The notes beneath the pieces are model-generated. The model did not search any database, had not been told where the DNA came from, and was given only the letters and a program-made list of their open reading frames with translations. Source: Lytechinus pictus (taxonomy: Eukaryota). Taken from it: a DNA stretch of 64,000 nt. The translations under genes and the position numbers were made by a program. The first letter of the stretch is position 1. Every line of letters starts with the position of its first letter. Of the stretch, positions 1 through 54,687 are shown in pieces. The stretch spans positions 46,624,001-46,688,000 of the forward strand of contig NC_087246.1 in NCBI RefSeq assembly GCF_037042905.1. Reading direction: 5' to 3'.

Positions 1-733
1 TTAAATACATGAACACTTCATATTGACTGGATATTATAATTGCACATGGAAACAAACACACTTTATTATTAAATTCTTTGTTTTAATGAGTAATGCATCT
101 AAACATATATTGCCATTTTATACCGATTTTATTTTTCTATCTTTGTAAACCCCGACTAGTGAGGAGAGCTTCATAACAGAAACTAGTTTTTCTTTTAGTC
201 ATCCTCGGGCACTAGTTGGTGGTAATTTATTCCTCTTGTACATATTCTTGTTGTCTTTTGCCTGAAAAAAAAATATTAAAAAAATATTAAAAAATTGGGC
301 AATCACTTTAAGTAGTCATGAAAGAGAAGCATATGTCAATTAATAAAACAATAATAATTCGAAGTGCGAGGAAATATATTTGGTGTATATTGACTTGAAA
401 ACGGGATGTTTTAGTACAACAGGATTATATATCTCGTTAAATAGACAATGCGAACACCAGGAACAATGAAGACATTGGCCCTGAGCAAATTATGTTTCAT
501 AAAGTTATGAACTTGTTTTTATTTGTATGTAATATAACATAACATAACATAATTATAATATAATATTATAGTAAACAATAATTTATTCTTTTTTGGGTGG
601 GGGGGGGGGGGGGGCACGTGCTGTTTTGCCTCTTTAAATCATTGTCACACAGTGTTGAAAGCGGTGACGAGTTTTTTCTATTATTATTATTCTATTGGCT
701 CTGTCCGACCTGTATTATCTCTAAAAGACTGAA

Positions 734-1164
734 AGAAGAATTTCACCCTGACAATTAGTTGGTTCCAATAATATAAGAAAAAATTGAAAAAAGTCATCGT
801 GGAGGTCTGACGAAAATCCTTTGGAAAAAACGGAGTTATGAAAATTTAAAGTTTTTATTTTTTGAGGTCACAAACAGGCAACTCATCCATATGCCGTGTG
901 ACACAATTCCCACAAATTGGCATTATCTAAAAAAGGAACTGAACTGGATTTAACTTGTTGGATTATCCTCAGACACGTCATTTCATACCCCTTTCTGTAA
1001 GAAAATAATTTTTACTCATCATTATGGACGAGCTGCTAAAAAAAATAAAGACTTTGACAATTTACAAATCTCTTAACGGATTTCATCAAACCTTCACCAA
1101 TGTTTTTCTATATTTTTGTTCTGCTTTTATTAAAATTAACTCGTCATCAGGGTGACCTTCCCCT
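734..1164. mobile_element. Non-autonomous TTAA-type (Kolobok-like) MITE, degenerate
   Basis: Left end aagaatttcaccctgac, right end tcatcagggtgaccttcccct|ttaa. The same terminus (aaaggggaagttcaccctgatga) recurs at 57281. Confidence 0.55.
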
Positions 1165-1715
1165 TTAAACTGACACTCACGGCTGAAAATAATATAATAA
1201 TTAAAAATGTATGAATATATAAAGCTAAATCAGACATATAACACTGGACATTTCATCGAAATCGAATAAGTAACAACTAAGTCATGGCACTATAGTTTAT
1301 ATCATTTCGGCAAATACATGTCTTCATAAATATGCATGCAGTAAGCGAGCTGAAATTATATTTATTGGAATTTTGTCTTCCAAAAATGTACACTGCAATA
1401 TGATTTACTGCAACTTATTTTGTTACGAGGGCACTTTTTATATGCACACATGTACGAAAATATGAAATGGTTATCATTTCATGTAATGAAAAAAAAAGGG
1501 GGGGGGGTGGGTAAAGAGGGTGCCTGACATCATAAGCCTACATATTTCATGCATATTATTGCTATTGTTTTCACAAAATATTGCTAAATTTTAAAATTCA
1601 ATAACTTCGTTCTTATTTGCTTTCGATGAAAATTTTCAACGTTTCTTCGATCGTTTTGGTTTAATCTATCTATTTAGACATGACTATTCAACCTGGAGTA
1701 TATGCACCCCTCTAA

Positions 1716-1865
<150 letters not shown>

Positions 1866-2889
1866 TAAGTGAATTCCTCACTACTGTTATTACCCTGCCC
1901 TTTTTCCATTAATCGTACCAATTATATGTAAATATTGTGATTATGTTTGTGATTGCTAACCCAATAAAACACATAATTTAAAAAAAAAGTAACTGAATTC
2001 AAGGCATATTACTTTTGGGTATATAAATTCAATTACAAAACAGATCACTTCAAGATGAATCTGGATGTACTTATTACAAGCAAAGCTAAGTCACCATTTC
2101 CGTCAGCAGATGCTAAGAAATACACTGTTAGAAAATTTATCCTTAAAATAAAAGAAGTTCCTGCAGCAGAGTCTCGAGAACACCTGCAATCTTACCAGAT
2201 TGCGTAATCTTACATTGGGTCATTCCATGCCAATTCACCCAATGAATGTGCAATTTTGCACCCGACCCTCTCGGAATTCGTTGTAATTTGGTACACATAA
2301 AATTCACCATGGCCCACACACAAAACAAAAAAATAGGTCCAATTGGTCCGTTGGTTCTCGCGCTACGGCCCGCCCTTTTCTCCTTGTTTTGACAAAAATG
2401 GGCGTGACCCTCAACTTTAAATGGCCACTGCGTCGTAATGTGTTGACCAATTTTCATGAAACTGGTACCATTTATTAGGAAATTAAGAGAGGAATCCAAA
2501 ACATGCATCACATAATGTATTGGAGCGATTTATAAGGTCTCGACCTTTGACCTTGAGTTTGACCCCCAGACAAATAATTTTTTAACTTGATTTTCGTGTA
2601 TGTTAATTATTAGTATGATATTGACAAAATATGTTAAAATCAATGATGATATTTTATTTCTTCACCTTTTAAAACTCTTCCAAAGATACCATTAAATTTC
2701 ACTCTAGTCCTACATACTGATATTCATGTTAGTATAGTGTTTACCAGTTACATGATTTCTTCCAATCTTAAGTTACAGTATGAATGCACATGAAAAGAAA
2801 TTAAGCTCATCAGTTCACAAATGAAACATTAAACATTTATGCTCATGAATAGGTATCTGTTTAGGCATTTTTATGTTCAGCAATATATA

Positions 2890-3747
2890 GGGGAAGGCGG
2901 GGTAAGTTGTGACACTTTTTGCATTTTGCATGTTAGAATTGATATGACTAATAATATTGTAGAAATAAGTACCTTGCCTTTAAATTTGATTCTTGGGAAA
3001 TATTTTTCACCTATATATAACTTTCTACCCCCACACTGAAATTCATTGTGACCTTTGAAAAAAAAAATGTCAAATGGCTCAACTTGCCCCATATGTGGGG
3101 TAAGTTGTGCCACCTTCTGGGGTAAGTTGAGCCACAAAAACTATGTACAAAATGTATGCGGGAAGAAGCAGCATGTCAATTTTTTATTTCAAGTCTTTTC
3201 ACTTGCTAATTCTCTATAAATACTAACATCCTCTAAAAGAAAAGAACTGTCATGAAAATTTACACCATTCTGCCTGCATATCAATGGCTTTTCAAGGTTT
3301 TTTAATTTTTTTATTCTTATTATCATAAGAATTACCATGGCTCAACTTGCCCCATGTTGGCTGGCTCAAAGTACCCCAGTCCGAACTTAATGCGATATTT
3401 TCACATCCACACATTTCTTATGCATCCATCATTTAAAATACTATGACAATAATGAAGATCTATACCTGGACAAACAATATTGTTCTTATTTCTTTGTTAT
3501 ATTTAAAGACGTTTGTGGGTAAAAAGCACTCCTCTATTTTACACCCTTTTTACTATTTTGGCTGAAATTTGTATTTTTCCGTTTAAAAAAGTACTTTTTG
3601 TTTCAAAGTCAAAAACAATGTGGTTGGGTAAAGGGTTATGTAATGGGTCATCAATACATGACACCACCACAATGTCTGACTCATTCATTATTGGCTTGGG
3701 GGTGGTGGCTCAACTTGCCCCTATGTTCAACATACCCCGCCTTCCCC
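2890..3747. mobile_element. Tc1/mariner/pogo-type MITE
   Basis: ta|ggggaaggcggggtaagttg ... caacataccccgccttcccc|ta; TA TSD; internal copies of ggggtaagttg / caacttgcccc. Confidence 0.85.
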
Positions 3748-4287
3748 TATCATATGTATATAAATTCTTGTTAGTAAATAGGCATATACTCAACAATTTG
3801 ATGATAAAAGTAAACACTTTACTAACAAGAATATATATATACATATATATGATATATATTGCTGAACATCAAAATGCCTAAACAGATACCTATTCATGAG
3901 CATAAATGTTTAATGTTTCATTTGTGAACTGATGAGCTTAATTTCTTTTCATGTGTTTGCATACTGTAACTTAAGATTGGAAGAAATCATGTAACTGGTA
4001 AACACTTTTACTAACATGAATATTACTAGTATGTGGGACTAGAGTGAAATTTCATGGTATCTATGGAAGAGTTTTAAAAGGTGAAGAAATAAAATATCAT
4101 CATTGGTTTTAACATATTTTGTCAATATCATACAAATAATTGACATACACGAAAATCAAGTTAAAAAATTATTTGTCCGGGGGTCAAACTCAAGGTCAAA
4201 GTATAGGTCAGAGAATAATGACGGCGATATGGCCATTCTAAAGGTTCACTCAAGCGTGACGCGCGCACAATAGAATATGACGTAATA

Positions 4288-5022
4288 CATTAGCATAACA
4301 ATGAAGGGTTGAATAGGGATAATTAGCATAACAATGGAAGGGTTGAATAGGGATAATTAGCATAACAATGGATGAATAGTCGGGAAAGATGGCCATTGAA
4401 TAGGGGGTCGATTAGCATAACAATGGAAGAGTAGTCTGGAAGGATGGCCATTGAATAGGGATCATTAGCATAACAATAGCGAGTGCGGAAAGATCGGATG
4501 GACATTGAATAGGGGTTGATTAGCATAACAATAGCGAGTGCGGAAAGATCGGATGGCCATTGAATAGGGGACATTTAAATAACAATAGCGAGTGCGGAAA
4601 GATCGGATGGCCATTGAATAGGGGTTGATTAGCATAACAATAGCGAGTGCGGAAAGATCGGTTGGCCATTGAATAGAGGATATTTAAATAACAATAGCGA
4701 GTGCGGAAAGATCGGATGGCCATTGAATAGGAGATATTAGCATAACAATAGCGAGTGCGGAAAGATCGGATGGCCATTGAATAGGGGACATTTAAATAAC
4801 AATAGCGAGTGCGGAAAGATCGGATGGCCATTGAATAGGGGTTGATTAGCATAACAATAGCGAGTGCGGAAAGATCGGATGGCCATTGAATAGAGGATAT
4901 TTAAATAACAATAGCGAGTGCGGAAAGATCGGATGGCCATTGAATAGGAGATATTTAAATAACAATACCGAGTGCGGAAAGATCGGATGGCCATTGAATA
5001 GGGGATCATTTAAATAACAATA
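4288..5022. repeat. 54/55-bp tandem array in left arm (10 full units plus ~4 shorter/degenerate outer units)
   Basis: Unit taacaatagcgagtgcggaaagatcggatggccattgaatag plus a variable end (gggttgattagca / ggacatttaaa / aggatatttaaa). Unit starts at 4471, 4526, 4580, 4635, 4689, 4743, 4797, 4852, 4906, 4960. Confidence 0.97.
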
Positions 5023-5307
5023 ATCGCAGTGACGTAGTAATGTTACGTATCTGTTAGAAGGGACGCGTAGTCTCCTTGGCAACGAATGAACAACCATAAA
5101 GTTGAATGGAAGGATTAAAAGAGTGTTATTGTTAGAGTAGATTTTGGGTAATATAATAGCACTGGGAAAAAAGGGCAGGAGTGTCAAAGTTTGACTTACC
5201 CTTTTAATATTTCCATTCGAGCGTCGATCGTCCAAAATATTCTCCATATTAACATTGTCATAATATTCAAAACCTAGTTTCCCATGTCCATATATTACAG
5301 TGAACAT
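4846..5307 (-). CDS. Hypothetical ORF in Polinton-like arm, running out into the tandem array
   Basis: ATG-initiated in the left arm (MFTVIYGHGKLGFEYY...). The right-arm copy has a 1-nt insertion just after the ATG (atgtttcact, ~9394). The C-terminal third is translated repeat. Confidence 0.35.
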   Translation of the reverse strand: MFTVIYGHGKLGFEYYDNVNMENILDDRRSNGNIKRVSQTLTLLPFFPSAIILPKIYSNNNTLLILPFNFMVVHSLPRRLRVPSNRYVTLLRHCDYCYLNDPLFNGHPIFPHSVLLFKYLLFNGHPIFPHSLLLFKYPLFNGHPIFPHSLLLC

Positions 5308-5368
5308 ATTTACAATGAAGATTAAGTGATGCCATTATACATATATACAACTCATATTTTATTGAAAA

Positions 5369-5812
5369 TTAATCGATTTCATCTATAGGTAAGATCCCGT
5401 TTATGGTTCCTTTGTATAGAATCTTCGACGCTGTGTATCCTTTTTTGAACCAGCATGGATGTTTGTAGAATGAGAAGGAGGCTGCTGGAATCTTCGTGCT
5501 TGCAATGTGATTGAGATAGACATCGATGAATAATTTATTATTACAAAATCGTTGAAGAATTCGTCTCTTCCACCCTTTAGACCAATCTTCTTTCAACTCG
5601 TGAGGCATGCCGTGCCTGTGTAAGAGTTCGAATTTCTCTTGGTCTGAAATAGTTTCGTAGTGATTGGAGATGAGACACCCTGGTATCGCTACGCAACGAT
5701 TTTCTATCGACGCCATCCCTGGAACACAATCCTTCTCAAACCTGTCCAGCGTGTCTTTGTGATCTCCCCAAATTAATTCCTTTGCAACTCCTTGATTTTC
5801 CATCGCTTCCAT
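5369..5812 (-). CDS. 147-aa hypothetical protein carried in left inverted arm
   Basis: Intronless ATG-TAA ORF, open in both arms, globular-looking composition; no family recognised. Confidence 0.65.
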   Translation of the reverse strand: MEAMENQGVAKELIWGDHKDTLDRFEKDCVPGMASIENRCVAIPGCLISNHYETISDQEKFELLHRHGMPHELKEDWSKGWKRRILQRFCNNKLFIDVYLNHIASTKIPAASFSFYKHPCWFKKGYTASKILYKGTINGILPIDEID

Positions 5813-5899
5813 CGATTTTTCCTCTTAATTTTGGATCTTCCCCCATACTCTTCTCCCTCTATCATCTATATTATAATAGATGAAAGAAAACGAACCATT

Positions 5900-6105
5900 C
5901 AAGATGTCATGGTCGAAAACAACCTTTGATTTTCTAACAAAGCGAGGAATGCATGAACTAATCTTTGTATCTTCACTCCAATCGGTTATTTTGGTAAACG
6001 ATAGAAAGCAAACTACTTAACGATGTCTTGGTCGAAAAAACTTTTGATTTTTCGAACAAAGCGAGGAATGTTAGAAACTAATCTTTGCATCTCCGCTCCA
6101 ATCAG
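5900..6105. repeat. Imperfect ~120-bp direct duplication upstream of the 147-aa ORF (mirrored at ~8593-8800)
   Basis: gatgtc(a/t)tggtcgaaaa...aacaaagcgaggaatg...aactaatctttg(t/c)atct..ctccaatc occurs twice; each copy carries a CCAAT. Confidence 0.8.
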
Positions 6106-6526
6106 TTCTTTCATACTTCCATAGTTTTCATTTTGACCCGCATACACGTCTCTCTTTATTGGCTTTCTGACTCACACAAATTGTATTACATAGATGGCAC
6201 TAGCTTCAGGTCAACTCCATTCACGCACATGGTGATAACATAGAACACTGTACAATTACATGTTATTATTATTCATTTTTATTCCATTTTAAGTCCAGAC
6301 ATATACACAAAGAAGATTTTGATACAAAGGTAAAAGTAATCGAAGTACGTATTGTGTAGACAAAATAATTGTTAACTGTTATATCTTCGCTGTAACACAA
6401 TCCATGTATAGGCCTATGGCTGGTATGCATATTGACGATAGAAATAATAGAGTTCAATCTGTCATTTTTGTTGACGGCGTTTTCAAGTTCTTTGATTATT
6501 TTTGTTGACAAGGTGGTGTTGTGCCT

Positions 6527-7204
6527 TTAGTTGTAGACTCCATCCTCACTCTCTGTTTCTTCATCATCGTCGTCATCGTCACCTCCATCTTGGAACTGGA
6601 ATAAACCATCAAATTGTGGACCATGCCTGGCTAAGACTCTTTGTACGGCTTTCTGGAATTCCATGCCATTTTCTAGTCTTTCCTTGAGATCAGAAACGAT
6701 CTCGTGATTGACGTCAGCTTCTCCTAGGCTAATGTTTTGCTGCAAGAACTTGGAGTAAAGATCGGAAAAGATGCGTTTGACGGCCCACAGTAATTTCACG
6801 TGCGCTTTTTCTTTAGCGTCTTCTTCTTCCATTCCCTCTGAAATATATTTCTGATATTTTTCGTCTCTCAGGTCCTTGGTGGCTGTCATGGCCTGCTCCA
6901 ACCATACTTGGTAAGCAAGGTTGTCTTCAATTTCATCCATGTTATCTGTCTCTGACATTGACGATTCATCCTCTCCATCGTTTTCTGAATCACTAGATTC
7001 TTCAACTCCCTCCGTTTGAGAGGGTGGTTCGGAGTAATCATCCTCACTTGTACCTTCTTCAGCGTCGGAAGATTCAATTTTGCCTTCATCTTCTGTATCA
7101 GGGTGAGCTTTTTGTTCATGCCTCTGCATATCAAACTTCCGACTATAGGTCCTATTGCATTGGGAACATGCGTAACGCCGGTTGGACATATCAAGAGCGT
7201 TCAT
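6527..7204 (-). CDS. 225-aa protein: N-terminal C2H2 zinc finger, acidic linker, helical C-terminal domain (Polinton accessory-type)
   Basis: YACSQCNRTYSRKFDMQRHEQKAH fits C-x2-C-x12-H-x4-H; long D/E/S tract; intact intronless ORF inside the element. Confidence 0.85.
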   Translation of the reverse strand: MNALDMSNRRYACSQCNRTYSRKFDMQRHEQKAHPDTEDEGKIESSDAEEGTSEDDYSEPPSQTEGVEESSDSENDGEDESSMSETDNMDEIEDNLAYQVWLEQAMTATKDLRDEKYQKYISEGMEEEDAKEKAHVKLLWAVKRIFSDLYSKFLQQNISLGEADVNHEIVSDLKERLENGMEFQKAVQRVLARHGPQFDGLFQFQDGGDDDDDDEETESEDGVYN

Positions 7205-7277
7205 GTTGACTCGATGCTGTTTAGGTCAGAATTGAATCAAAGTGTTATCAATCGTATCTTTATACATGATGTCAACA

Positions 7278-7440
7278 TCCATAAACGAATCCGTAGATCC
7301 GTAATGGAATCCATAGATCCGTTAAACGAATCCGTAATTCCGTTCAACGATTCCGTATAAATCCGCTAAACGAATCCGTAGATCCGTAAACGAATCCGTA
7401 AATCCACTAAACGAATCCCAAGATCCGTAAAAGGATTCGA
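7278..7440. repeat. Short (8-13 bp) ATCCGT/AAACGAATCCGT tandem repeat; inverted copy at 8133-8250
   Basis: tccgttaaacgaatccgtaattccgttcaacgattccgtataaatccgctaaacgaatccgtagatccgtaaacgaatccgtaaatccactaaacgaatcc is reverse-complemented at ~8150-8250. Confidence 0.92.
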
Positions 7441-8885
7441 ACTTCTTTGAATCATATTGATAGAATTGACAAAGTTTAATCTGTTTTAAATCAAGGAACA
7501 ACCAATGACTTTGATATTGGAGTACATATTTTATTACTACCAATGGTTTAAAGAGTTATACAGACCTCATGTAGGAATTTATGACAATACTGATGATTCG
7601 CAATATTTGGGGTTTTACTAAGGATTTATGACGTCATTACTTTTCAGATTACGCAATGCATTCTTGGATGGTGCAACGTCGAATTGATTTTGTACATGCA
7701 ATACCGTGTTATGCACGAATGATCAAGCATGCAACGGCTTCATGAGCGTGGAAAATCCTATCACTTCCCCTACTTCATTGAAAGTATAAAAAGTCAAGAT
7801 TTAATGCTCAAAATCAACTTTGTTCGTATATACGATGTTATCTGTTTGGAAAATTCAATGACACACTTTATTACCCTACCATATGTAATATTCAGCGTTA
7901 TGTAATATCGTTGCGCACGGCCGATCGAGTGGGCATAATTGACGTCATGCTTGAGGGAATACCCAATAATGTTTATCAGGGCCCCGTCTTAGAAAGAGTC
8001 AATCAATTGTAACTCTTTGGAAATCCATCCACCATATTTTTTTTCTATGGGAAATTTGCACAATATCTTTTGTAAACAAAGAGAAGCATATATAAATTTT
8101 TAAGAAAACAATGAATGCTTGCATATACATCATCGTTGAACGGAATTACGGATTCGTTTAGTGGATTTACGGATTCGTTTACGGATCTACGGATTCGTTT
8201 AGCGGATTTATACGGAATCGTTGAACGGAATTACGGATTCGTTTAACGGATTATTTCTATCGTCAATATTCATACCAGCCATAGGCCTATACATGGATTG
8301 TGTTACAGCGAAGATATAACAGTTAACAATTATTTTGTCTACACAATACGTACTTCGATTACTTTTACCTTTGTATCAAAATCTTCTTTGTGTATATGTC
8401 TGGACTTAAAATGGAATAAAAATGAATAATAATAACATATAATTGTACAGTGTTCTATGTTATCACCATGTGCGTGAATGGAGTTGACCTGAAGCTAGTG
8501 CCATCTATGTAATACAATTTGTGTGAGTCAGAAAGCCAATAAAGAGAGACGTGTATGCGGGTCAAAATGAAAACTATGGAAGTATGAAAGAACTGATTGG
8601 AGCGGAGATGCAAAGATTAGTTTCTAACATTCCTCGCTTTGTTCGAAAAATCAAAAGTTTTTTCGACCAAGACATCGTTAAGTAGTTTGCTTTCTACCGT
8701 TTACCAAAATAACCGATTGGAGTGAAGATACAAAGATTAGTTCATGCATTCCTCGCTTTGTTAGAAAATCAAAGGTTGTTTTCGACCATGACATCTTGAA
8801 TGGTTCGTTTTCTTTCATCTATTATAATATAGATGATAGAGGGAGAAGAGTATGGGGGAAGATCCAAAATTAAGAGGAAAAATCG

Positions 8886-9329
8886 ATGGAAGCGATGGAA
8901 AATCAAGGAGTTGCAAAGGAATTAATTTGGGGAGATCACAAAGACACGCTGGACAGGTTTGAGAAGGATTGTGTTCCAGGGATGGCGTCGATAGAAAATC
9001 GTTGCGTAGCGATACCAGGGTGTCTCATCTCCAATCACTACGAAACTATTTCAGACCAAGAGAAATTCGAACTCTTACACAGGCACGGCATGCCTCACGA
9101 GTTGAAAGAAGATTGGTCTAAAGGGTGGAAGAGACGAATTCTTCAACGATTTTGTAATAATAAATTATTCATCGATGTCTATCTCAATCACATTGCAAGC
9201 ACGAAGATTCCAGCAGCCTCCTTCTCATTCTACAAACATCCATGCTGGATCAAAAAAGGATACACAGCGTCGAAAATTCTATACAAAGGAACCATAAACG
9301 GGATCTTACCTATAGATGAAATCGATTAA
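8886..9329 (+). CDS. 147-aa hypothetical protein, right-arm copy
   Basis: Inverted duplicate of 5369-5812 with one amino-acid change (CWFKK to CWIKK) and one silent change that I spotted. Confidence 0.65.
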   Translation: MEAMENQGVAKELIWGDHKDTLDRFEKDCVPGMASIENRCVAIPGCLISNHYETISDQEKFELLHRHGMPHELKEDWSKGWKRRILQRFCNNKLFIDVYLNHIASTKIPAASFSFYKHPCWIKKGYTASKILYKGTINGILPIDEID

Positions 9330-9679
9330 TTTTCCATAGAATATGAGTTGTATATATGTATATTAAATGGCATCACTTAATCTTCATTGTAAATATGTTT
9401 CACTGTAATATATGGACATGGGAAACTAGGTTTTGAATATTATGACAATGTTAATATGGACAATATTTTGGACGATCGACGCTCGAATGGAAATATTAAA
9501 AGGGTAAGTCAAACTTTGACACTCCTGCCCTTTTTTCCCAGTGCTATTATATTACCCAAAATCTACTCTAACAATAACACTCTTTTAATCCTTCCATTCA
9601 ACTTTATGGTTGTTCATTCGTTGCCAAGGAAACTACGCGTCCCTTCTAACAGATACATAACATTACTACGTCACTGCGA

Positions 9680-10198
9680 TTATTGTTATTTAAATGATCC
9701 CCTATTCAATGGCCATCCGATCTTTCCGCACTCGCTATTGTTATGCTAATCAACCCCTATTCAATGGCCATCCGATCTTTCCGCACTCGGTATTGTTATT
9801 TAAATATCCCCTATTCAATGGCCATCCGATCTTTCCGCACTCGCTATTGTTATGCTAATCAACCCCTATTCAATGGCCATCCGATCTTTCCGCACTCGGT
9901 ATTGTTATTTAAATATCCCCTATTCAATGGCCATCCGATCTTTCCGCACTCGCTATTGTTATTTAAATGTCCCCTATTCAATGGCCATCCGATCTTTCCG
10001 CACTCGCTATTGTTATGCTAATGATCCCTATTCAATGGCCATCCTTCCAGACTACTCTTCCATTGTTATGCTAATCAACCCCCTATACAATGGCTATCTT
10101 TCCCGACTATTCATCCATTGTTATGCTAATTATCCCTATTCAACCCTTCCATTGTTATGCTAATTATCCCTATTTAACCCTTCATTGTTATGCTAATG
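9680..10198. repeat. 54/55-bp tandem array in right arm (6 full units plus degenerate outer units)
   Basis: Reverse complement of the left array; cctattcaatggccatccgatctttccgcactcg at ~9701, 9756, 9810, 9865, 9919, 9973. Confidence 0.97.
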
Positions 10199-11027
10199 TA
10201 TTACGTCATATTCTTTTGTGCGCGCGTCACGCTTGAGTGAACCTTTAGAATGGCCATATCGCCGTCATTATTCTCTTAGGTCAAAGGTCACGACCTTATA
10301 AATCGCTCCAATACATTATTTGATGCATGTTTTGGATTCATCTCTTAATTTCCTAATAAATGGTACCAGTTTCATGAAAATTGGTCAACACATTACGACG
10401 CAGTGGCCATTGAAAGTTGAAGGTCACGCCCATTTTTGTCAAAACAAGGAGAAATGGGCGGGCCGTAGCGCGAGAACCGAAGGACCAATTTGACTTATTT
10501 TTTTTTGTTTTGTACGTGGGCCATGGTGAATTTTATGTGTACCAAATTACAACGAATTCTGAGACGGTCGGGTGCAACCACTGGGTGAATCCAGATGGAA
10601 TGACCCCATTATATCATGTAAAATTACAGGAAATTGGTATTTGGTGTATGGAACCTTACAAACTTCCTTAAATAAATACCATTTTCCCCCTTTTAAACAG
10701 ACCTGTTCTGTTAAAGGGTATAAAAATTCCTGTTTTATGAATAAACAAAATGATTCAGTTATTGCTTTCTGCAAAATCTTGTTTTTTCTGTAAAATCAGG
10801 GTATTTTAACAGTGTAGAACTTTACCTTTTTTTTTAAATTGCAGATGATATAATTTTCCGCCAAGAAGCAAAATTACACCAATGAAACCCGGCGATGAAA
10901 TAAAATTAGACACCTTTTATGTACATGATAAGTTATGACGGGGGCGAAGCAGGGAGATATGCATTTCCATTATAATGAATTAAAAAATGTCAAATCCTCC
11001 AATTCATAAAAATATTGGGCTGCTTCA

Positions 11028-11186
11028 GGGGAGCGTTTCATGAAAGGACTTGTCGGACATTTCATCCGACAAGTCCTGTTTTATCCGACAGTTACCATAG
11101 TAACAGTGCCTCTCGGCCAATCAGATTCAAGGAAAGTTGTCAGATCTGACAACTTGGAGGACAAAAATGTTGATGAAACACTCCCC
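11028..11186. mobile_element. Small Harbinger/Tourist-like MITE carrying an X-box and CCAAT
   Basis: TIRs ggggagcgtttcat / atgaaacactcccc; internal gttaccatagtaac and ccaatcag; relatives at ~23437-23589 and ~41595-41725. Confidence 0.7.
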
Positions 11187-11419
11187 GGAACCTCGATCCA
11201 GCACCCCCGCTTCCCAGGGCCATGTGTTCAGCATCAATCGGGTCCCCAATTAGAACATCAGTTTGGCCCCCGTTACATTCGGGTTGAGTTTGCGCCCCCG
11301 AGTTCCAGATCAATATGGCACCCGTATCAACTTTGCACCCCCTGTTAAATATAAATTTGGCGCCCCAGGCGCTTCCATAAAGCCCAACGCATACTATGCG
11401 ATGAGATTGCACCAGTTAA

Positions 11420-11819
11420 AGGACAAGTCCACCCCCAACAAAAAGTCGATTTGAATAAAACAAGAAAAATCCAACAAGCAAAACACTGAAAATTTCATCA
11501 AAATCGGATGCAAAATAAGAAAGTTATGACATTTTAAAGTTTCACTTAATTTCACAAAACAGTTATATGCACATCATGGACAGTATGCAAATTAGGAGAC
11601 TGATGACGTCACCAACTCACTATTTCTTATGTATTTTATTATATGAAATATGAAATATTCTAATTTTTTCCTCATTGTCAAGTGAAACAAATATTAATTT
11701 CTCCCTGATCATATGGAAACAGCATTGCTTAATACTATATGGTTCAGTCAAGTTGGTTCTTATTGTCAAATCCGTAAAGAATGAAATATTGTATAATTTT
11801 TCTGGGGTGGACTTGACCT
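11420..11819 (-). mobile_element. Kolobok-like TTAA MITE (family A), internally deleted
   Basis: ttaa|aggacaagtccacccc ... ggggtggacttgacct|ttaa; opposite orientation to the 14326 copy. Confidence 0.88.
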
Positions 11820-11969
11820 TTAAGATCCGATTACAACAAGTTGCCAATCCCATCTCAGTGCAATCACTTACACACAAATCGATTTATTTCTGTGCACGTT
11901 ATCATGTTTATGATGATAAAAATTAACTTAAATATATGTTTTGTTTTTCTCATTTTTATTGTTTTGTAA

Positions 11970-12107
<138 letters not shown>

Positions 12108-12189
12108 TGACTGATAAACACAGACTTTGTACCTCCGCATAAGTTTAACAACATCTTAAAAGAAATGTACAAGCGATATTATTATCATG

Positions 12190-13197
12190 ATAGTAGTAAT
12201 TGTAGTAGTAATAATAGTAGTAGTAGAAGTAGTAGTAGAGTAGATGTAGTAATAGTTATAGTAACTTCAAAATAAATATGCCAGAATGCTTTTGAAAAAA
12301 GATTATAATACATCACAAATTTCTTTGTTGCAGTCACTGAAGTGGCAATCAGTAGATCAGCGTATAAAATATCAGTATTGTGTTCTTGTATATAAAGTAA
12401 TGAATGATTTAGTTCCAAATTATTTAAAACCTTTAGTATGTAAACGGCCCGTGAAATACAGGACACGGTATTCTTTACGATGCCCCCTTCAGCTTCCCAA
12501 AGCTAGAATTGAACATAAAAGAAAATCTTTCGCATATGTCGGACCCAAATTATTCAATGCACTTCCTTCAAATTTACAAGTTTGTACCTCCTTGTTTTTA
12601 AAAAATTATGCAAAGCCTTTCATACGAATTGATAGAGAGCGAAATGATATTCCATTGATTTACAATGCTATGTATGTTTAAATTGTCACTTCCCACTCTA
12701 TATTTTGGTGTTAATTGTTTCTGATGTTAGATATTTTGTATTTTTGATGTTGTTTGTTGTTGTTGTTCATAGTTATCTTGACATGTATTTTAAACTGCAG
12801 GGCGCCTTTGTAAAGCAGTTTTAAGCACTGAACAGGCCTACCCTGCAGTATAAAATAAATAAAACAAAATAAATAAATAAATGTTATTAGTAATATTAGT
12901 AGCTGTAATTAGAGTAGAATTACAAGTAGTAATTTAAAAAATAGTCGTAAAAGTAGAGTAGTAGTAGAAGAAGTTGTAGTAGTAGTAGTAAAGTATTAGC
13001 AGTAGTGGATAAAAATTAGCAGAAGTAGTCGTAAAAGTAGTAGTAGTAATAGTAGAGTAGCAGTAGAAGAAGTACTAGTAGTATAGTAGTGGTGGTGGTG
13101 GTGATAGTAATAGTAGTAGTAGTAGTAGTATTAGTAATAGTAGTAGTAATAGTAGTATTAGTAGTAGTAGTAGTAGTAGTACTAGTAGTAGTAGTAA

Positions 13198-13233
<36 letters not shown>

Positions 13234-13431
13234 ACTANNNNNNNNNNNNNNNNNNNNNNNNNNNNNNNNNNNNNNNNNNNNNNNNNNNNNNNNNNNNNNN
13301 NNNNNNNNNNNNNNNNNNNNNNNNNNNNNNNNNNNNNNNNNNNNNNNNNNNNNNNNNNNNNNNNNNNNNNNNNNNNNNNNNNNNNNNNAGAAGTAGTAAT
13401 AGTAGAAGTTGTAGTGGTCATGGTGGTGGTG
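12190..13431. repeat. (TAG/AGT)n microsatellite tract, interrupted by a LINE 3' end and an assembly gap (13238-13388)
   Basis: Direct inspection. Confidence 0.95.
12284..12881 (+). mobile_element. 5'-truncated L2/Crack-type LINE 3' remnant
   Basis: LKWQSVDQRIKYQYCVLVYKVMNDLVPNYL...KSFAYVGPKLFNALP is a typical L2/CR1-group ORF2 C-terminus; ends in an (AAAT)n-like tail. Confidence 0.85.
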
Positions 13432-13432
13432 G

Positions 13433-14240
13433 TTTCGCACAACAACGCGAACGGACCTCTGCGACGCTAGTGATTTTTGGAAGAGACTTTTAGCCCCGTC
13501 GTAAAAAAAAGTGTGTGATATATCAGAAAATAAGACTTTTCGCAACCGCAACAGAGACGTTAGATCTGCGGTTCGTGTGCAAAATTCTAGTTGCTATAGC
13601 AACTAGAAATTGGTTACAGCGACATCTCCGACTTGGGATGATTTTTTTGCAACCATCGAGAACTACACGCTCGAGAGCGCCCTATAATATGGAAGCGAAC
13701 AGCCAATCAAGTCACCTCTATATACACTAGATACTTATATTTTTACTCTCTGTACACATAGTACAGGGAACCCACGGGGCATATTTCCTTCACATTGTGT
13801 GGAAGACGGCTTGCCGTTTGTAAAGGAGGAGCCAAATCAAGCGAGAAAAAAAATCCAGACTTATTACAGACGGATTTTAGCTTTGCAGATCAACGCATGA
13901 CACACGGTTTAGATTTTACAGGTGAAAGTGACCTTTGAATGTAATTGCAAGCGATCCACCAATCCATCGGCCGCTCAGATGAGCAAGGCTCTACAGTTTT
14001 TTTTTACGACGGGGCCAAAAGTCTCTTCCAAAGTCACTAGCGTCGATCGCAGAGGTCCGTTTGCGTTGTTGTGCGAGAACTCTCTAGTGACAGGCGACCT
14101 GACTGGCATGTGGCTTTCGACTTTTGAAAAAAAAAATCATCCCAAAACGGAGATGTCGCTGTAACCATAGTACCAACAATTTTTGCACACGATCGAACCG
14201 CAGATCTAACGACCCCGTTGTTGTGGTCGCGAAAAGTCTC
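13433..14240. repeat. Two interleaved inverted-repeat pairs (A-B...A'-B')
   Basis: 13433-13515 pairs with 13992-14078; 13533-13648 pairs with 14126-14240. Confidence 0.75.
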
Positions 14241-14325
14241 TATACTGTCTCACCAAACTTCAGATCGGAGGTCGTTTTCATGTACTTGCTTGGTTTATAT
14301 CCGTTATCGGTATTATTATTATTAA

Positions 14326-14916
14326 AGGTCAAGTCCACCCCAGGAAAATGCTGACTTGAATAAAAAGAGAAAAATCAAACTAGCATAGTGCTGAAAATTT
14401 CATCAAAATCGGATGTAAAATTAGAAAGTTATGACATTTTAAAGTTTCACTTATTTTTCACAAAACAGTGATATGCACAAATAGGTGAGTCAGTCGATGA
14501 TGTCCATCACTCACTTTTTCTTTTGTTTTTTATTGTTTGAATTATACAATATTTCATTTGTTATAGATTTGACAATAAGGACCAACTTGACTGAACCATA
14601 TAGTATTAAACAATGCTAATTCCACCTGTTCAGGGAGGAATTAATCGTTGTATCACTTGACAATGAGGAGAAAATTAGAATATTTCATATTTCATGTAAT
14701 AAAATACAAAAGAAATAGTGAGTGGATGACGTCATAGTCTCCTCATTTGCATACCAGCCAGGATGTGCATAAAACTGTTTTGTGAAATTAAGCGAAACTT
14801 TAAAATGTCATAACTTTCTTATTTTACATCCGATTTTGATGAAATTTTCAGTGTTATGCTTGTTGGATTTTTCTCTTTTTATTCAAATCAACTTTTTGTT
14901 GGGGTGGACTTGTCCT
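14326..14916 (+). mobile_element. Kolobok-like TTAA MITE (family A), full length
   Basis: ttaa|aggtcaagtccacccc ... ggggtggacttgtcct|ttaa; long imperfect TIRs; several other copies in the window. Confidence 0.92.
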
Positions 14917-15335
14917 TTAAATACAATAGACAGGAAATTTAATTGAATAAATAGCAATAAGGATCCCGGTCTTCGAGTTAGAAATTATTGATAAAATTTG
15001 ATAAATGGAAAGCTAGACGTGATTGATCATAGCGTGTGTATACGCGCACTGTTAAAATCACAGCGATACCATCTTACATGCGATTAATATATTTAAGCCC
15101 CGCCCATAGATAGGTTCCCCCCCCCCTTTTTTTTTAATAACTATTAACGGCTTGGGGTCCTATTCCCGCGGCTTATGACGTCAGATGTCGGAAATCATGC
15201 GGCATTTTTTTTTGCCAATCTCGAGACAATGGTTGGAACTAACTTTGTTCAGGGGTTTAGACCAATCACCTGCTTAGATTTTTATCATGACGGATATAAA
15301 ATAAATTAATTTCTCAATGATCGTTTCTCTTACAG

Positions 15336-15374
15336 GTGATTCATCTCAGAGACCCACCTATAACAATAGATACG
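15336..15374 (+). CDS. GRB2: GRB2-family adaptor, 39-nt micro-exon (end of SH2)
   Basis: ttctcttacag|...|gtaagt; phase 0-0; VIHLRDPPITIDT matches GRB2 QIFLRD. Confidence 0.88.
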
Positions 15375-15548
15375 GTAAGTATATTTCTTATATAAAACCA
15401 GCAATTCATGGGCTAATGCTGGGCTTACGTATGAGGTCTCATTGTTTAGTGAATATATTGCACGCATACCTTGCTATTATAGTATTAAACACTATTCAGC
15501 GAAACGTCATATGTTGTCCATGTTTCAGTGAATATTGTGACGCTTATA

Positions 15549-15832
15549 AGGCCCGGCCCCACTGCATTACGGATGCAGAGAGGGTGTAAAACGGAAAAAG
15601 AATCTTGCCATCCGTTTGAAAACGTTATGTATCCGTTGTGTACTCTTTGCATACGTGTTACATATGCTCTATATCCATCGAGCATCCGTCCACTGTCTTT
15701 TCATTGTTCGCCCATTTTGTCCCATGTCTAGCTGGAGCAGATGAAAACGGATGGAACCACCACGAAATTTTGCTTGTCCGCAGTATCCGTTATGAATACG
15801 TTTTGCATCCGTCGGCCAGTGGGATCAGGCCT
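15549..15832. mobile_element. Harbinger-like MITE
   Basis: Imperfect TIRs aggcccggccccactg / cagtgggatcaggcct; internal atccgt/acggat motifs. Confidence 0.6.
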
Positions 15833-16399
15833 TTACCCTGTTGGGTTAAGAAATTCCCAGTTGCCAATAATCATGACACAGTGTATATGATATAGTTGTT
15901 TTAACATGAACTTTGGTTGAGAATGCAAGGAAAGTACACACACCTGCAAGGGCAGTCAATTGTGGGCATCTTTCGTAACGGTCATCAATGATTTTTCACT
16001 TCAAAATAATAAATAATAAAACAATAAATTGTCGCGATCAAATTTTGTTACGAAATATCTTTTGCAGGTCTATTTTCATTCAAACCAGGGACACGATAAG
16101 CACGTTAAGATTAGGCAAAAACATAGAAGGGTTTGCTTGTCAAAATTTCCAGCCCCTGGTCCCCGTGCCTTTGGGGAGAGATTTCCGCCCTTGCCTCTTC
16201 CCCCCTTTTTTCACCCCTACCATCCTTCACCCTGTACCATCCCCCACCCTGGAGTGTAGATCCGCCTCGACTGAAAAACACCTCAAACCATTGCATGCAG
16301 AAATGTAAACATGTTGTTTATCCACAATAATATAAACTAGATTTATTCTTATATATTATTTATTACCCGTCTTCTGCATTTTTATGTTTGATTATCCAG

Positions 16400-16432
16400 A
16401 GTAAGACACCAGATGAGCTCAGAATGCAGTTG
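16400..16432 (+). CDS. GRB2: GRB2-family adaptor, probable 33-nt linker micro-exon
   Basis: tatccag|...|gtgagt; phase 0-0; SKTPDELRMQL, open and frame-preserving; no homology support. Confidence 0.65.
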
Positions 16433-16911
16433 GTGAGTTGATATTTGTTAAAGGGCAAGTCCACCCACCCCAACAAAAAGTGGATCTGAATAAAAAGAGA
16501 AATAATATCCATCCAGCTCAACACTGAAAATTTCATTAGAATCAGAGGTAAAGTAAGAAAGTTATGGCATTTGAAAGCGTCGCTTAATTTTACAAACAGT
16601 TATATGTATATCCTGGTCTGGATTATGCAAATGGGGGGGGGGGGGGGGGGGGGGCTGGTGACGTCACCCAATCACTATTTCTTTTGTATTTCATTATATG
16701 ATATATGGTATATATCTCTTCATTGCCATGTGAAACAAAGTTATATTGCTCCCTGAACATGTGGTATTACCACTGTTTTAACATTTTATGCTTCGGTCAA
16801 GTTGGTCCTTTTTGTCAAATTTGTAAAAACTGAAATAACGTATAACTCAAACAATAAAAACAAAACAAATAGTGAGGGACATGACCGTCTCATTTGCACG
16901 TCACTGAGATG

Positions 16912-19158
16912 CAGTGGCGTAACTACGGGGGTGCATGGGGGGCACGTGCCCCCCAATCGGCTGGCAAAAAAATAAAAGGGGGAAAGGGAGAAAAGAGGGA
17001 GAAAGGAAAAAAACGTAGCGGGAAAGAGGAAATTATTGTTCATTATAATTATAATAATAATTATGTTGTTATATTACATAAGAAACATTTTTTCATAACT
17101 TTATGAAACATAATTTGCTCAGGGCCTATGTCTTCATTGTTCCGGGTGCTCACATTGTCTGTTTAAAGAGATATATAATCCTGTTGTACAAAAACCTCCC
17201 GTTTTCAAGTCAATATACTTTAAATATATTTCCTCGCACTTCGAGTTATTATTGTTTTATGTAGTGGCATAAATTTGTTTTCATGACTATATAAAGTGAT
17301 TGCCCCATTTTAAGGTCTTAAAATGTCCCTTTTTCTAATCTGAATATCAAAATTTTCAGCTCGCGCTTCGCGCTCGCATCATTCGGTTAAGCCCCTTTCA
17401 CAATTGACGTACGACCTGTTTACGACCGCCTGCAACAGTTTTTTCTTGTTGTTGCACGATCGATCTCCTGGTGTCTTGCGAGCACTCGCAGTGGTTGTAG
17501 ACGAACGCACGAATTTGAGGTGGTCGTGACTGGTCGCATCTGAATTTGAACATGTTCAAAATCCAAACGCGATCAAATACGATTGATTTACTCGCATCAG
17601 GTCGTACCATCGGTCGGGCGATCATCGTGTGAGTGTTGTTCAACGTTGTGCGACTTGGTGCGAGAGGTGACACAACTACGTATAGTCGCATTTAGTCGAC
17701 TGGAGGTCGTACAACACTTGCACATGCGCTAGATATATACCTACAGAGACCAGTCTTGCGACTGGTTGCGATAATATAAGACTGTTGCAAGACCGATCGA
17801 AATTACGGCTTACAACATTCCACTACCGTTGCATTCGCATGTATGCGACCGTACATTCCCTTTCACAATTGACATCCGACCAGTTTACGACCGCCTGCAA
17901 CAGTTTTTTTCTGCTGTTGCACGATCGATCTCTTGGTGACTTGCGAGCACTCGCACTCGTTGTAGACGGTCGCACGAACTCGAGGTGGTCTTGACTGGTC
18001 ACATCTGAACTTTGAACATGTTCAAAATCCGAACGCGATCAAATACGACCTATTCACTCGCATCAGCTCGTATCCGGGGTCGTACCATCGGTCGGGCGAT
18101 CATCGTGGGAGTGTTGTTCAACGTTGCACGACTTGGTGCGAGAGGTGGCACAACTAAGTAGTCGCATTTACTCGACTGGAGGTCGTACAACACTTGCACA
18201 TGTGCTAGCGACCTACATGTACAGAGACCTGTCTTGCGACTGGGTGCGATAATATGATGGGCCATAAGACTGTTGCAAGACCGATCGCAACGGCTTACAA
18301 CATTGCACTACCGTTGTTTGCGACCGTTCCCCTCGCAATCCCTCGTGCAACACTCGCATGTGATCGCACGAGCACAATAGGATCATAAGCGACTTACTCG
18401 TGCAAGGGGTTTTACTGGTTGTTTTTGTTGTACGACAGCTGTTGCAACTGTGAAAGCCTATGTGCGATATTATGAGATGACTGGCGATTGATGCCTGTTG
18501 CAGCCTGTCGCACGACCAAAAGGTCGCAAGTGGTCGTACGTCAATTGTGAAAGGGGCTTTAGTGAAATAGTATGGTCGTAGTGAATTCCTACAAACAAGC
18601 CTTAGAATGCCCCTCTTCAGGTCTGAATTTCCTAAATATTCAGCTCGCACTTTGCGCTCGCAATATTTGATTAGTGAGATGCGTATGATAATCGTGATTA
18701 CAATGAGTACAAAAAGTGCTTCGTGTGTTTAGTTGTAATTTTAACAAAATCAGCAGGCGCTTGGCACTCGCATTAGATGACTATGGTAAGATATATATAC
18801 TCTTAATGGATTCCTTTAAAAAATAGTCCTTAAAATATCCCTGTTTGGGGTCAATATATAAAAAACTTTCAGCTCGCGCTTCGCGCTCGCATTGTTTGTT
18901 TAGCGAGACAGGTACGTATCATGATTACAAAAATTTGCTTATAATGTCCCTTTTTAGGTCTAAATATAAAAAAATTTCAGCTCGCGCTTCGCGCTCGCAT
19001 AATTTGATCAGTGACATACATATCCGTTTAATGGCACTGTCCTTAAAATGTCTTAGGTCAGTATACCTAGCAACTGAGCACGCTTCGCGCGCTCACTAAG
19101 TGACTCAAATTTTTGTTCTTGTGCACCCCCCAATTCTGTGACCCAGGGTACGCCACTA
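16912..19158. mobile_element. Non-autonomous hAT-like element
   Basis: ctgagatg|cagtggcgta ... tacgccacta|ctgagatg (8-bp TSD); repeated ttcagctcgcgcttcgcgctcgca motifs. Confidence 0.88.
17390..18558. mobile_element. PIF/Harbinger-type non-autonomous element with ~465-bp internal tandem duplication
   Basis: tta|agcccctttcacaattgacgtacgacc ... ggtcgtacgtcaattgtgaaaggggct|tta; ~17393-17835 is repeated at ~17858-18320. Confidence 0.9.
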
Positions 19159-19807
19159 CTGAGATGTGCATATAACCTGTTTGTGAAAAATGTGCGAAAC
19201 CTTAAAACGTCATAACTTTCTTATTTTACATCCGATTTTGATGAAATTTTCAGCGTTCTGCTAGTTTGAGTTTTCTTTATTGATTCAAATCAACATTTTT
19301 ATGGGGTGGACTTGACATTCAATAATTTGGGCATGTTACTGATGAATAGTGTAGCACACTCGAAAAGCAGACATCGCTATTTTCTGATCCCAGTGATGTC
19401 ACACACTATACAGTACATGCGTGTGCGCCGGTTATGATTATCTGAATGCTGATTTTGGGGGTATTTAAGTTTCATCATAAGATATACCGGATGATTAATA
19501 TATAGTTATTATATGCAATCGGTCTAATACCCCGGGCTTTTTGTCATATTTCGTAATGATCGAATGACTCTAAAATGTATTTTTGTCTTTTCAGGGAATA
19601 TTACTAGAAGATGGCTAACAATTATAGTTTTAAATTGGCAATTCAAATTTGTAATTGAAGATAATTGTTAGCCAAGATCAACACGCTATAGCATCGGAGA
19701 GGTTGGAGGAGAGATAAATATTATATATTTTTTTAAATGTTATATTTGAACCTTGCATAATTTAGTTCAATAACGATGCAAATGCACATCAACGGTACGT
19801 ATGTAAA

Positions 19808-20261
19808 GGTTCCGTGACACTTGCTCCGGCGACAATTGCTCCGCTGTAAATTACACACACTAATGGACTGACCAACTTCAACCCTGGATTTGACACTACG
19901 GCCCGTATTCTGAAGTCAGGTTTAAAGTTGTGGTTTAAGTATGGATAGCCAATTGTTACATAAATCACTAACAGTAGAGATATCATATTTCAGCTCATTT
20001 TGCTCTCAAATCATTCATAATTGTCTATAGCCTCTAGGAAGCATAAATAGACGATTGTCTTCACCATTGAAGAATCAGGAAAGAGCACAGTAAATATAAG
20101 AAACATACAACTTAATAAAAATTTTGACACTTTTGGCTTCCCATAATTTTAGCACAGAGTAAGACCATGGTCAAAGATAAACCTGACTTCAGAATACGGG
20201 CCTATATCTTAGACGAAATGAAGCCCGGGGTGATTGTCGCCGGAGCAAATTTCGTGACACC
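19808..20261. mobile_element. Small MITE containing a second MITE (19900-20202)
   Basis: Outer ttgctccggcgacaat / attgtcgccggagcaa; inner ggcccgtattctgaagtcaggttta / taaacctgacttcagaatacgggcc. Confidence 0.78.
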
Positions 20262-20300
20262 CGTATAAAACTCGTATTCATATATATTTTACACTTGTAG

Positions 20301-20498
20301 GGTGCTGGGAAAAAGAAGTACAAGGCATTATGGGATTTCGAGGCAGTGGAAGAGGGATATATGTCTTTAAAAAAGAATGATACCATTACTCTCATCAACA
20401 AGGTAGAAGGTGATTGGTGGATGGGAGAGATCGTAACGGAAACTGGAACACGAGATGGTCTATTCCCCGCGACATATGTTGAAGAAATTCATTCTTAA
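20301..20498 (+). CDS. GRB2: GRB2-family adaptor, terminal exon encoding C-terminal SH3
   Basis: cttgtag|; GAGKKKYKALWDFEAVEEGYMSLKKNDTITLINKVEGDWWMGEIVTETGTRDGLFPATYVEEIHS* carries the ALWDF, WW and GLFPxxYV SH3 motifs; phase 0. Confidence 0.92.
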   Translation, partial: GAGKKKYKALWDFEAVEEGYMSLKKNDTITLINKVEGDWWMGEIVTETGTRDGLFPATYVEEIHS

Positions 20499-36903: not shown

Positions 36904-37486
36904 AAGTGGGGGTTGGTTATAAGATGAAATGGTAATAAGCCAATCTCCACTTACCGACTTTATGCGTGTAGAGACATCCGACAGACAATCCTCCAATATA
37001 TTCAAAGTGCTCCAATCATTGCACGATCCCAATATTTGTATGTATACGTGCATATTATACACAAAATCACACAGATATTATCACAAAAACTAACTTGGCT
37101 AGCACAAGCGGTATTTTGGATTTTTCTCTTAGTGGAATGACGGAGAAATAAAAGGGTAGTACGAAAACTTGTTGAATATGAAGTAGAAGATACAATGGAT
37201 GAATTTGCTCTAAGTGAGACGATGGAAGTCCACAAAAGTATTAAGTAATTTGACGACGTTCTCAAAACACGTGTTTACTAAAGACGAAAACTTTGAGAAG
37301 TGTGTCAGAAAAGAAAGTAGTAGTTTTCATCCCAAATGTGATGTAGGATGTAAACAAAGAGAGAGGGGAGAGAGAGGTACCAATTCAGAGAATTTATAGT
37401 GAGTCACAGGTGAGCATGGTGAGTGCTGTGTGAGGGTCATTATTGACGACATGTTGGCATGTTTATTGCTAAGGACTCCTAAGTAC

Positions 37487-54435: not shown

Positions 54436-54687
54436 CCAGCACCACCATTATTNNNNNNNNNNNNNNNNNNNNNNNNNNNNNNNNNNNNNNNNNNNNNNNN
54501 NNNNNNNNNNNNNNNNNNNNNNNNNNNNNNNNNNNNNNNNNNNNNNNNNNNNNNNNNNNNNNNNNNNNNNNNNNNNNNNNNNNNNNNTCATCACCACCAT
54601 CAATATCATCACCATCATCGTCGTCATCACCATCATCATCACCATCATCATCACCATCATCATCACCATCAACATCAGTATCATCAT
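54436..54687. repeat. (CAT/CAC)n microsatellite spanning a gap (54453-54587)
   Basis: Direct inspection. Confidence 0.95.

Follow-up and report, generated by a model that had tools for sequence, protein, structure and literature searches.

The palindromic element and its boundaries

The 64,000-nt stretch of Lytechinus pictus DNA considered here (the window) contains a 6,067-bp insertion at positions 4210-10276 that is organized as a large palindrome. The best explanation of this element, advanced tentatively, is that it represents a copy-back derivative of a non-autonomous family with a likely Polinton/Maverick helper, the family itself being young and multi-copy in L. pictus and falling within an old lineage of small elements in echinoderms. 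Members of this lineage share AGAGAA or AGTAGT ends, target-site duplications (TSDs) of 6 bp and one conserved gene, the open reading frame (ORF) termed ORF225. Apart from the window, the stretches examined comprised ~20-kb regions around seven other L. pictus ORF225 loci, ~31 kb of Amphiura filiformis, a brittle star, and three ENA contigs, these last being available as gene lists. The sampled L. pictus elements number eight, namely the window copy, the main copy and a fragment in L002, and those of L003-L007, with L003 being a more distant paralog.

The hexamer TAGGTC flanks the element on both sides and corresponds to a perfect 6-bp TSD. The element begins at position 4210 with AGAGAATAATGACGG, and its right end is the exact reverse complement of this sequence, closing with TTCTCT at position 10276, such that the ends of the element read AGAGAA...TTCTCT. 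The window contains exactly two occurrences of this 29-nt terminus, one per strand, with the expected number being zero. An earlier note on this DNA had described the TAGGTC duplication, AGAGA...TCTCT ends, inverted arms of 2.0-2.2 kb and ORFs that all point outward. Each of these features was confirmed, with ORF225 and both copies of a second frame, ORF147, indeed being oriented outward.

The left arm (4210-6448; 2,239 bp) and the right arm (10276-8250; 2,027 bp) are inverted relative to one another and share 97-99% identity. The gap in length arises because the left arm has one more 217/218-bp higher-order unit of its subterminal tandem repeats of 54/55 bp; the core motif of these repeats is present 12 times there and eight times in the right arm. 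Read inward from AGAGAA, the left arm comprises a 79-bp unique terminus, 34-bp and 54/55-bp tandem repeats (4289-5022) and the inner part of the terminal inverted repeat (TIR; 5023-5155), followed by ORF147 and non-coding DNA. An additional inverted match, overlooked in the earlier note, pairs 21-bp tandem repeats at 7317-7436 with those at 8132-8251 (94% identity), and a segment of ~0.86 kb (6449-7312) that includes ORF225 is present in the left half and absent from the right. Given the inverted 21-bp blocks and the loss of this segment from the right half, the unpaired loop of the palindrome spans only ~0.7 kb (7437-8131).

The window also contains a paralogous unoccupied site, i.e., a 94-95% identical copy of the host repeat hit by the insertion. 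This paralog passes straight from left-flank to right-flank sequence, except for a 12-bp indel at the join, thereby confirming an insertion with these bounds. Dada elements target small-RNA genes. As an Rfam scan of the region revealed no RNA family, the window insertion has no small-RNA-gene target of the Dada kind. The window copy sits in an AGGTCA-rich stretch of the host repeat (4185-4209 and 10277-10295). Tandem AGGTCA/TGACCT motifs are carried by the TIRs of elements with AGTAGT ends (L003 6660-6710; L015 8730-8800; L016 4690-4750).

The earlier note had allowed for the palindrome being an assembly artefact, which in this case would have been generated by a chimeric fold-back long read. 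Some other copies of the family, in which arms of 99-100% identity surround spacers of 22-57 nt, do look like such artefacts. The window palindrome is not of this kind, because substitutions and two indels separate its arms. Moreover, its two halves differ by the 218-bp repeat unit and the 0.86-kb segment, and the element is accompanied by unique non-palindromic flanks, a TSD and the paralogous unoccupied site. As such, an artefact is hardly credible here.

Standard copies and the origin of the window palindrome

Non-palindromic copies found at three different loci (L002, L004 and L006) are alike in architecture and share one junction between two segments, designated the centre and X. In this standard form, ~4.7-5.5 kb in length, the order is TIR, segment X (660 bp), centre, 21-bp repeats, ORF225, ORF147 and TIR. 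Each standard TIR measures ~0.7-0.95 kb and runs from a unique terminus through arrayed 54/55-bp repeats to an inner part of 130 bp, in which the two TIRs of a copy differ by ~10-13%. In L003, the TIR is ~0.3 kb long. Nested retroelements are found in all three standard copies and, in L004 and L006, have pushed the second TIR past the examined stretch.

In the window copy, the place of segment X is taken by the ORF147 side, repeated in inverted orientation. Within the left arm, only positions 4210-5155 match the other end of the standard copies. In both arms of the window copy, the inner TIR is of the ORF147-side type, and two private variants are common to its termini. No diagnostic differences between left and right were found in the outermost 240 nt of the TIR. 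The absence of X, the presence of the ORF147-side inner TIR in both arms and the shared private variants together indicate that the window element consists of the ORF147-side half of a standard copy and the reverse complement of that half, joined at one turn-round. As is characteristic of a copy-back product, both ends come from one parental end and the sequence of the other end is absent. The copy-back reading proposed in the earlier note thus finds support as far as anatomy is concerned, given the non-palindromic relatives, the inner TIR variant held by both arms and the other palindromes with other turn points described below. Of the internal junctions named in that note (7977, 8133 and 8250), two correspond to the inner bounds of the right repeat block and of the right arm, while the third has no counterpart, since the standard copies are collinear across that point.

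The standard copies also bear on a second reading offered in the earlier note, according to which the window element is the deletion relic of a Polinton with unusually long coding TIRs; applied here, this would have been a large element whose TIRs measured several kb. Arms of 2.0-2.2 kb with outward ORFs would suit such an origin. The TIRs of the standard copies are, however, of ~0.7-0.95 kb, with the unrelated segment X at the other side, and arm length varies among copies with the turn-round point. In addition, the lineage is already small (3.5 kb) in the brittle star, where ORF225 lies between ordinary TIRs, and ORF147 is not conserved. Both the standard copies and the fact that the elements are small in every species seen contradict a relic of this type, which is considered very improbable.

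Two regions of L002 were considered separately. Positions 4802-8788 were entertained as an extra element gene and ruled out, as they correspond to a nested non-LTR (long terminal repeat) retroelement and unrelated DNA. At positions 14733-20663, a unit bounded by inverted repeats and containing low-complexity G/C runs encloses a 92%-identical family fragment that includes part of ORF147, ORF225 and 21-bp repeats. This unit may represent either a subfamily related to the present one or some nesting of elements.

Palindromes with other turn points

Other members of the family are also palindromic. In L005, the palindrome is nearly perfect: each arm carries ORF225, the spacer is of 57 nt and the turn occurs at an inverted microhomology of 9 of 10 nt; a nested non-LTR 3' end lies within one of the TIRs. 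The L007 element is a palindrome of the opposite polarity, in which 3-kb arms of 100% identity surround a 22-nt spacer, with the genes pointing inward and the turn falling within ORF147. In L003, an inverted pair of ORF225-like genes is accompanied by a third partial copy, while L012, a metagenome contig from another organism, contains a 30%-identical ORF225 homolog together with an inverted partial duplicate. As the turn-round junction differs in every palindrome, these reflect independent events, and fold-back is recurrent in the lineage.

Such palindromes could conceivably have formed after insertion, were a break in a standard copy followed by invasion of the opposite TIR by the TIR-bearing end and by copying inward, such that the inverted repeat would be lengthened through repair or gene conversion. 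The standard copies offer 0.7-0.95 kb of inverted homology with which to start repair in place, a process that, like copy-back, needs just one seamless transition and one microhomology junction. The 99-100% identical arms of L005, L007 and L003 also fit ongoing arm-to-arm conversion. Yet, at least four of the eight sampled L. pictus elements are independent palindromes and L012 adds a case from a distant relative, a pattern that looks like a by-product of copying rather than a set of rare local accidents. Formation after insertion, which would raise the same question of family and helper, is accordingly deemed unlikely.

Despite their different turn points, the palindromes are all of 6.0-6.4 kb (window, 6,067 bp; L003, 6,142 bp; L005, ~6,378 bp without the nested insertion; L007, 6,040 bp). 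With only four elements to consider, this uniformity may reflect either chance or a size constraint.

Fold-back elements of other types were encountered in the same stretches. At L007 15200-18806, a distinct fold-back element of 3.6 kb has tandem repeats in subterminal position, is bounded by TACGAAG...CTTCGTA and is flanked by a 6-bp TSD (CCATCG). These features are the published hallmarks of IS3EU/GingerRoot, and related pieces are found in L006 (~1199-1379 and 6056-6185). In A. filiformis, a 4.3-kb fold-back element (L015 4117-8411), its arms measuring ~1.8 kb, is separated from the ORF225 element by 260 bp. As its ends start with TAGTCGG and its duplication is of 3 bp at most, it belongs to a different family.

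A family of small elements in L. pictus and other echinoderms

ORF225 is an annotated protein of L. pictus (GCA_037042905.1), and its 90% cluster comprises five sequences from six loci, of which those other than the window locus are L002 and L004-L007. In all six elements for which both ends could be read, perfect and mutually different 6-bp TSDs were found (Table 1). That the window copy is a mobile element, as the earlier note had supposed, and not a one-off is clear from L002 and L005, which have the same ends and other TSDs (GTAGTA and TATACT, respectively). AGAGAA also marks the left end of both L004 and L006. The second type of end, AGTAGT...ACTACT, is exact in L003, L007 and L015, and AGTAGT is also seen at the left end of L016.

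Within the ~99% family of L. pictus, copies differ from each other by 0-7 substitutions in 729 bp, i.e., by under 1%, in a star-like pattern that points to a recent burst. Outside L. pictus, the A. filiformis element (L015) has TIRs of ~0.5 kb with tandem repeats, between which lies one ORF225 homolog with one frameshift. In contig L016, an element begins with AGTAGTACAGGACGTC, close to the Amphiura terminus, with its other end lying past the contig edge. Wherever members of the family are seen, including in the brittle star, they measure 3.5-6.4 kb.

It is possible, if far from assured, that these elements form an ancient echinoderm satellite lineage of 3.5-6 kb, found in sea urchins and brittle stars, that combines Polinton-type ends and integration with retention of its own ORF225. 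Such a lineage would be a dependent parasite rather than a decaying deletion product, and would repeatedly yield integrated copy-back palindromes.

Coding content of the elements

When the ORFs of the window element were scanned (14 against Pfam and two against PHROGs), no polymerase, integrase, capsid, ATPase or protease was detected. The absence of these functions, including pPolB, had been noticed earlier and is hereby confirmed. Likewise, Pfam gave no match to the rve integrase either in the ORFs of the element or in the stretches around the other copies. The sole library match in the element was a weak single C2H2 finger in ORF225.

Of the three ORFs highlighted in the earlier note, ORF225 alone behaves like a gene. 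The product of ORF225 comprises an N-terminal single C2H2 zinc finger (E=2.8e-12 against the C2H2 profile), a variable acidic linker and a conserved C-terminal helical domain of ~110 residues. A profile search returned 62 relatives, including sequences named as being from purple sea urchin and one from A. filiformis. Between subfamilies, dN/dS is 0.11-0.42, and on the basis of such sequence comparisons ORF225 is under purifying selection and is the only conserved gene of the family. In the AF2 model of the protein (pLDDT 68.7), helices are found at residues 87-202, and comparison of this model with PDB and BFVD revealed no fold match beyond the zinc finger.

ORF147 was considered as a gene and as a THAP-like finger, and both assignments were ruled out, given that it has no Pfam or PHROG match, no relatives and no counterpart in related subfamilies. 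Indeed, a word-indexed search of 5.8 billion clusters yielded no relative, nor did a full HMMER search of 1.84 billion representatives, apart from a spurious plant pentatricopeptide repeat (PPR) protein. The frame is confined to the ~99% L. pictus family and, in L005, carries one frameshift in each arm. Judging by its distribution, ORF147 is probably a chance or very young frame rather than a conserved gene.

The family also seeds gene models, with ORF225 being annotated as a host gene at six L. pictus loci and one SH3/SH2 model starting in an arm. Specifically, the NCBI model of a flanking SH3/SH2-domain gene (L001 gene range 1-7763) begins at ~9442 in the right arm of the window element, 14 nt before the ATG of an outward ORF (9456-9749). 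This hints at either an outward promoter within the arm or a chimeric gene model.

The machinery likely responsible for mobilization

With neither a polymerase nor an integrase or transposase of their own, the elements must depend on mobilization in trans. In vertebrate Mavericks, the ends read (AG)3//(CT)3 or (AGT)2//(ACT)2, TSDs are of 6 bp and TIRs measure 46-1,447 bp, with reiteration at the ends having been tied to jump-back in protein-primed replication (PMC8097293). Comparable end features are found here, namely 6-bp TSDs, reiterated AG/AGT ends and TIRs of ~0.3-0.95 kb, within the range of tens of bp to ~1.4 kb; the arms of the window copy (2.0-2.2 kb) exceed this range because of fold-back. 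Considering the features of the ends alone, the elements are probably subject to Polinton-type mobilization. A sea urchin Polinton, Polinton-1_SP of the purple sea urchin, has been mentioned (PMC3014272). A search of IMG/VR with the conserved terminal 16-mer returned 19 matches, all of them internal and none at a contig end, corresponding to chance level.

The mechanism that would best account for the window copy can be outlined as follows. The helper would be the integrase, and probably also the protein-primed polymerase, of a resident Polinton/Maverick. The reiterated AG/AGT ends would serve jump-back initiation, and the repeat arrays are candidate protein-binding sites, possibly for the ORF225 product. 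Synthesis would begin at the ORF147-side terminus and switch templates once at a short inverted microhomology, after which copying would run back out to the same terminus, yielding a molecule with two identical, integration-competent ends. Such a two-ended product could then be integrated with a 6-bp duplication. The 0.86-kb loss that took ORF225 from the right half may have occurred at the same time or later.

Several observations weigh against copy-back with a Polinton/Maverick helper. In terms of anatomy, repair in place would yield the same final structure as copy-back. Moreover, the earlier note had asked about other copies with the same internal junctions and different 6-bp TSDs, and only the latter were found; neither the junctions nor the palindromic form of the window copy recurs at a second locus among the sampled copies. 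In terms of ends, AGAGAA agrees with (AG)3 at only five of six positions, and the L007 element can alternatively be read as having a 4-bp TSD and TAGTAG ends. The same genome also harbours an unrelated fold-back element, with a TSD of 6 bp and TA..TA ends, such that long, repeat-rich arms and 6-bp TSDs are not exclusive to the family. In terms of genes, none encoding pPolB, rve integrase, capsid, ATPase or protease was found in the ~20-kb stretches at the seven other L. pictus loci or in Amphiura, and none of the three ENA contigs with ORF225 relatives lists a Polinton gene. The stretches examined contained no autonomous Polinton with such termini, with no eukaryotic genome having been searched by DNA. 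Finally, ORF225 is absent from the known Polinton gene set, has no relatives among IMG/VR viral contigs and, as modelled, no viral fold match in BFVD.

It is well established that cut-and-paste elements give rise to fold-back derivatives. The elements could thus be fold-back-type partners of a DDE cut-and-paste transposon that generates 6-bp TSDs, either IS3EU/GingerRoot-like or undescribed, with the palindromes arising by template switching during gap repair after excision. Such a helper would be in keeping with the 6-bp TSDs of IS3EU/GingerRoot (PMC10045372), with the TA..TA fold-back element and its 6-bp TSD in L007, with the precedent provided by the fold-back element Tetris (PMC4079207) and with the lack of any Polinton gene near any copy. 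At the same time, all six elements have AG..CT ends rather than TA..TA or TG..CA ends, both types of end agree fully or almost fully with the two Maverick motifs in the literature, and no DDE transposase was found near any copy in the stretches examined. A DDE helper is therefore rated as rather improbable.

Relation to known elements

Like Polintons/Mavericks, the elements described here have 6-bp TSDs, ends reiterating AG or AGT and TIRs of hundreds of bp (~0.3-0.95 kb when fold-back arms are left aside), and both are present in echinoderms. Unlike Polintons/Mavericks, which are of 12-25 kb and contain eight core genes, they measure 3.5-6.4 kb and contain none of the eight, instead carrying ORF225, which is no known Polinton gene, and frequently appearing as palindromic copies.

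FB and TU fold-back elements make duplications of 8-9 bp. The present family resembles fold-back transposons (Drosophila FB, Tetris (PMC4079207) and sea urchin TU) in having long inverted arms that consist in part of subterminal tandem repeats, as well as modular, variable middle segments; TU likewise resides in a sea urchin host. It differs from FB and TU in the 6-bp TSD seen in six of six elements, in its AG/AGT-reiterated ends and in having a conserved protein gene in the arms. IS3EU/GingerRoot elements also generate 6-bp TSDs, yet have TA..TA or, occasionally, TG..CA termini (PMC10045372) and a DDE transposase, in contrast to the AG..CT ends and lack of a transposase seen here.

As for the palindromes themselves, copy-back (snap-back) defective genomes arise in replicators of linear double-stranded DNA that rely on protein priming, such as adenovirus. 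In both cases, the two ends come from one end of the genome, a single turn takes place at a short inverted microhomology and the sequence of the other end is lost, with two functional termini being kept (a property predicted for the present elements). In contrast to the adenovirus-type genomes, the palindromes described here are chromosomally integrated with TSDs and are known from integrated copies alone.

To our knowledge, non-autonomous partners of Polintons/Mavericks have barely been described, and we know of the replication mode of Polintons in animals as something inferred rather than observed. If the Polinton link is true, the turn-round junctions would be footprints of template switching, offering a sequence-level record of how the elements are copied, and Polintons would have dependent satellites, as do giant viruses and adenoviruses. 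If the helper is instead a DDE transposase, this would be an ordinary, though well-documented, fold-back family.

Feature coordinates and other features of the window

The coordinates of the features discussed above are collected in Table 1.

Table 1. Features of the window element and bounds of the family members with both ends readable. Positions are those of the window or of the stretch named.
Feature	Position	Strand	Remarks
Left TSD copy, TAGGTC	4204..4209		Direct reading; same hexamer at 10277-10282
Left arm, 2,239 bp	4210..6448	+	Inverted match to 8250-10276
ORF147, left copy	5369..5812	-	Orphan frame; no Pfam/PHROG match
Left-half-only segment carrying ORF225	6449..7312	+	Skipped in the arm comparison; kept in both arms of L005
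ORF225	6527..7204	-	Annotated L. pictus gene; single copy in the window element
21-bp tandem repeats, left block	7282..7438	+	TRF; inverted match to 8132-8251, 94%
Central unique spacer (palindrome loop)	7437..8131	+	Collinear with the centre of standard copies
21-bp tandem repeats, inverted block	8132..8252	-	Turn-back point onto the complementary strand; standard copies enter segment X here
Right arm, 2,027 bp	8250..10276	-	Left arm in reverse complement, lacking one of its 217/218-bp repeat units
ORF147, right copy	8886..9329	+	One residue apart from the left copy
Right TSD copy, TAGGTC	10277..10282		Direct reading
Paralogous unoccupied site	2256..2889	-	94-95% copy of the host repeat hit by the insertion
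Window element	4210-10276		Ends AGAGAA; TSD TAGGTC
L002 element	3884-12561		Ends AGAGAA; TSD GTAGTA
L005 element	5276-12684		Ends AGAGAA; TSD TATACT
L003 element (82% related subfamily)	6638-12779		Ends AGTAGT...ACTACT; TSD AAAGCA
L007 element	8487-14526		Ends AGTAGT...ACTACT; TSD AGCATT
L015 element, Amphiura filiformis, 3,525 bp	8672-12196		Ends AGTAGT; TSD GGCATA

Elsewhere in the window, three runs of N are found (13238-13388, 36045-36292 and 54453-54587). A 514-aa ORF at 37430-38974 contains a reverse transcriptase domain (RVT_1, E=3.9e-27) and corresponds to a retroelement. A 397-aa ORF without a Pfam match (30916-32109), overlapped by a 262-aa ORF on the opposite strand, coincides with the GC maximum of the window (0.45). 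Finally, an interspersed repeat of ~0.6 kb with internal inverted structure is present in many copies in the window, at sites including 11417-11798, 14322-14919, 40654-41237 and 61236-61835, as well as in L004 and L007 (77-89% identity), and is probably an element resembling a MITE (a transposable element of the miniature inverted-repeat type).

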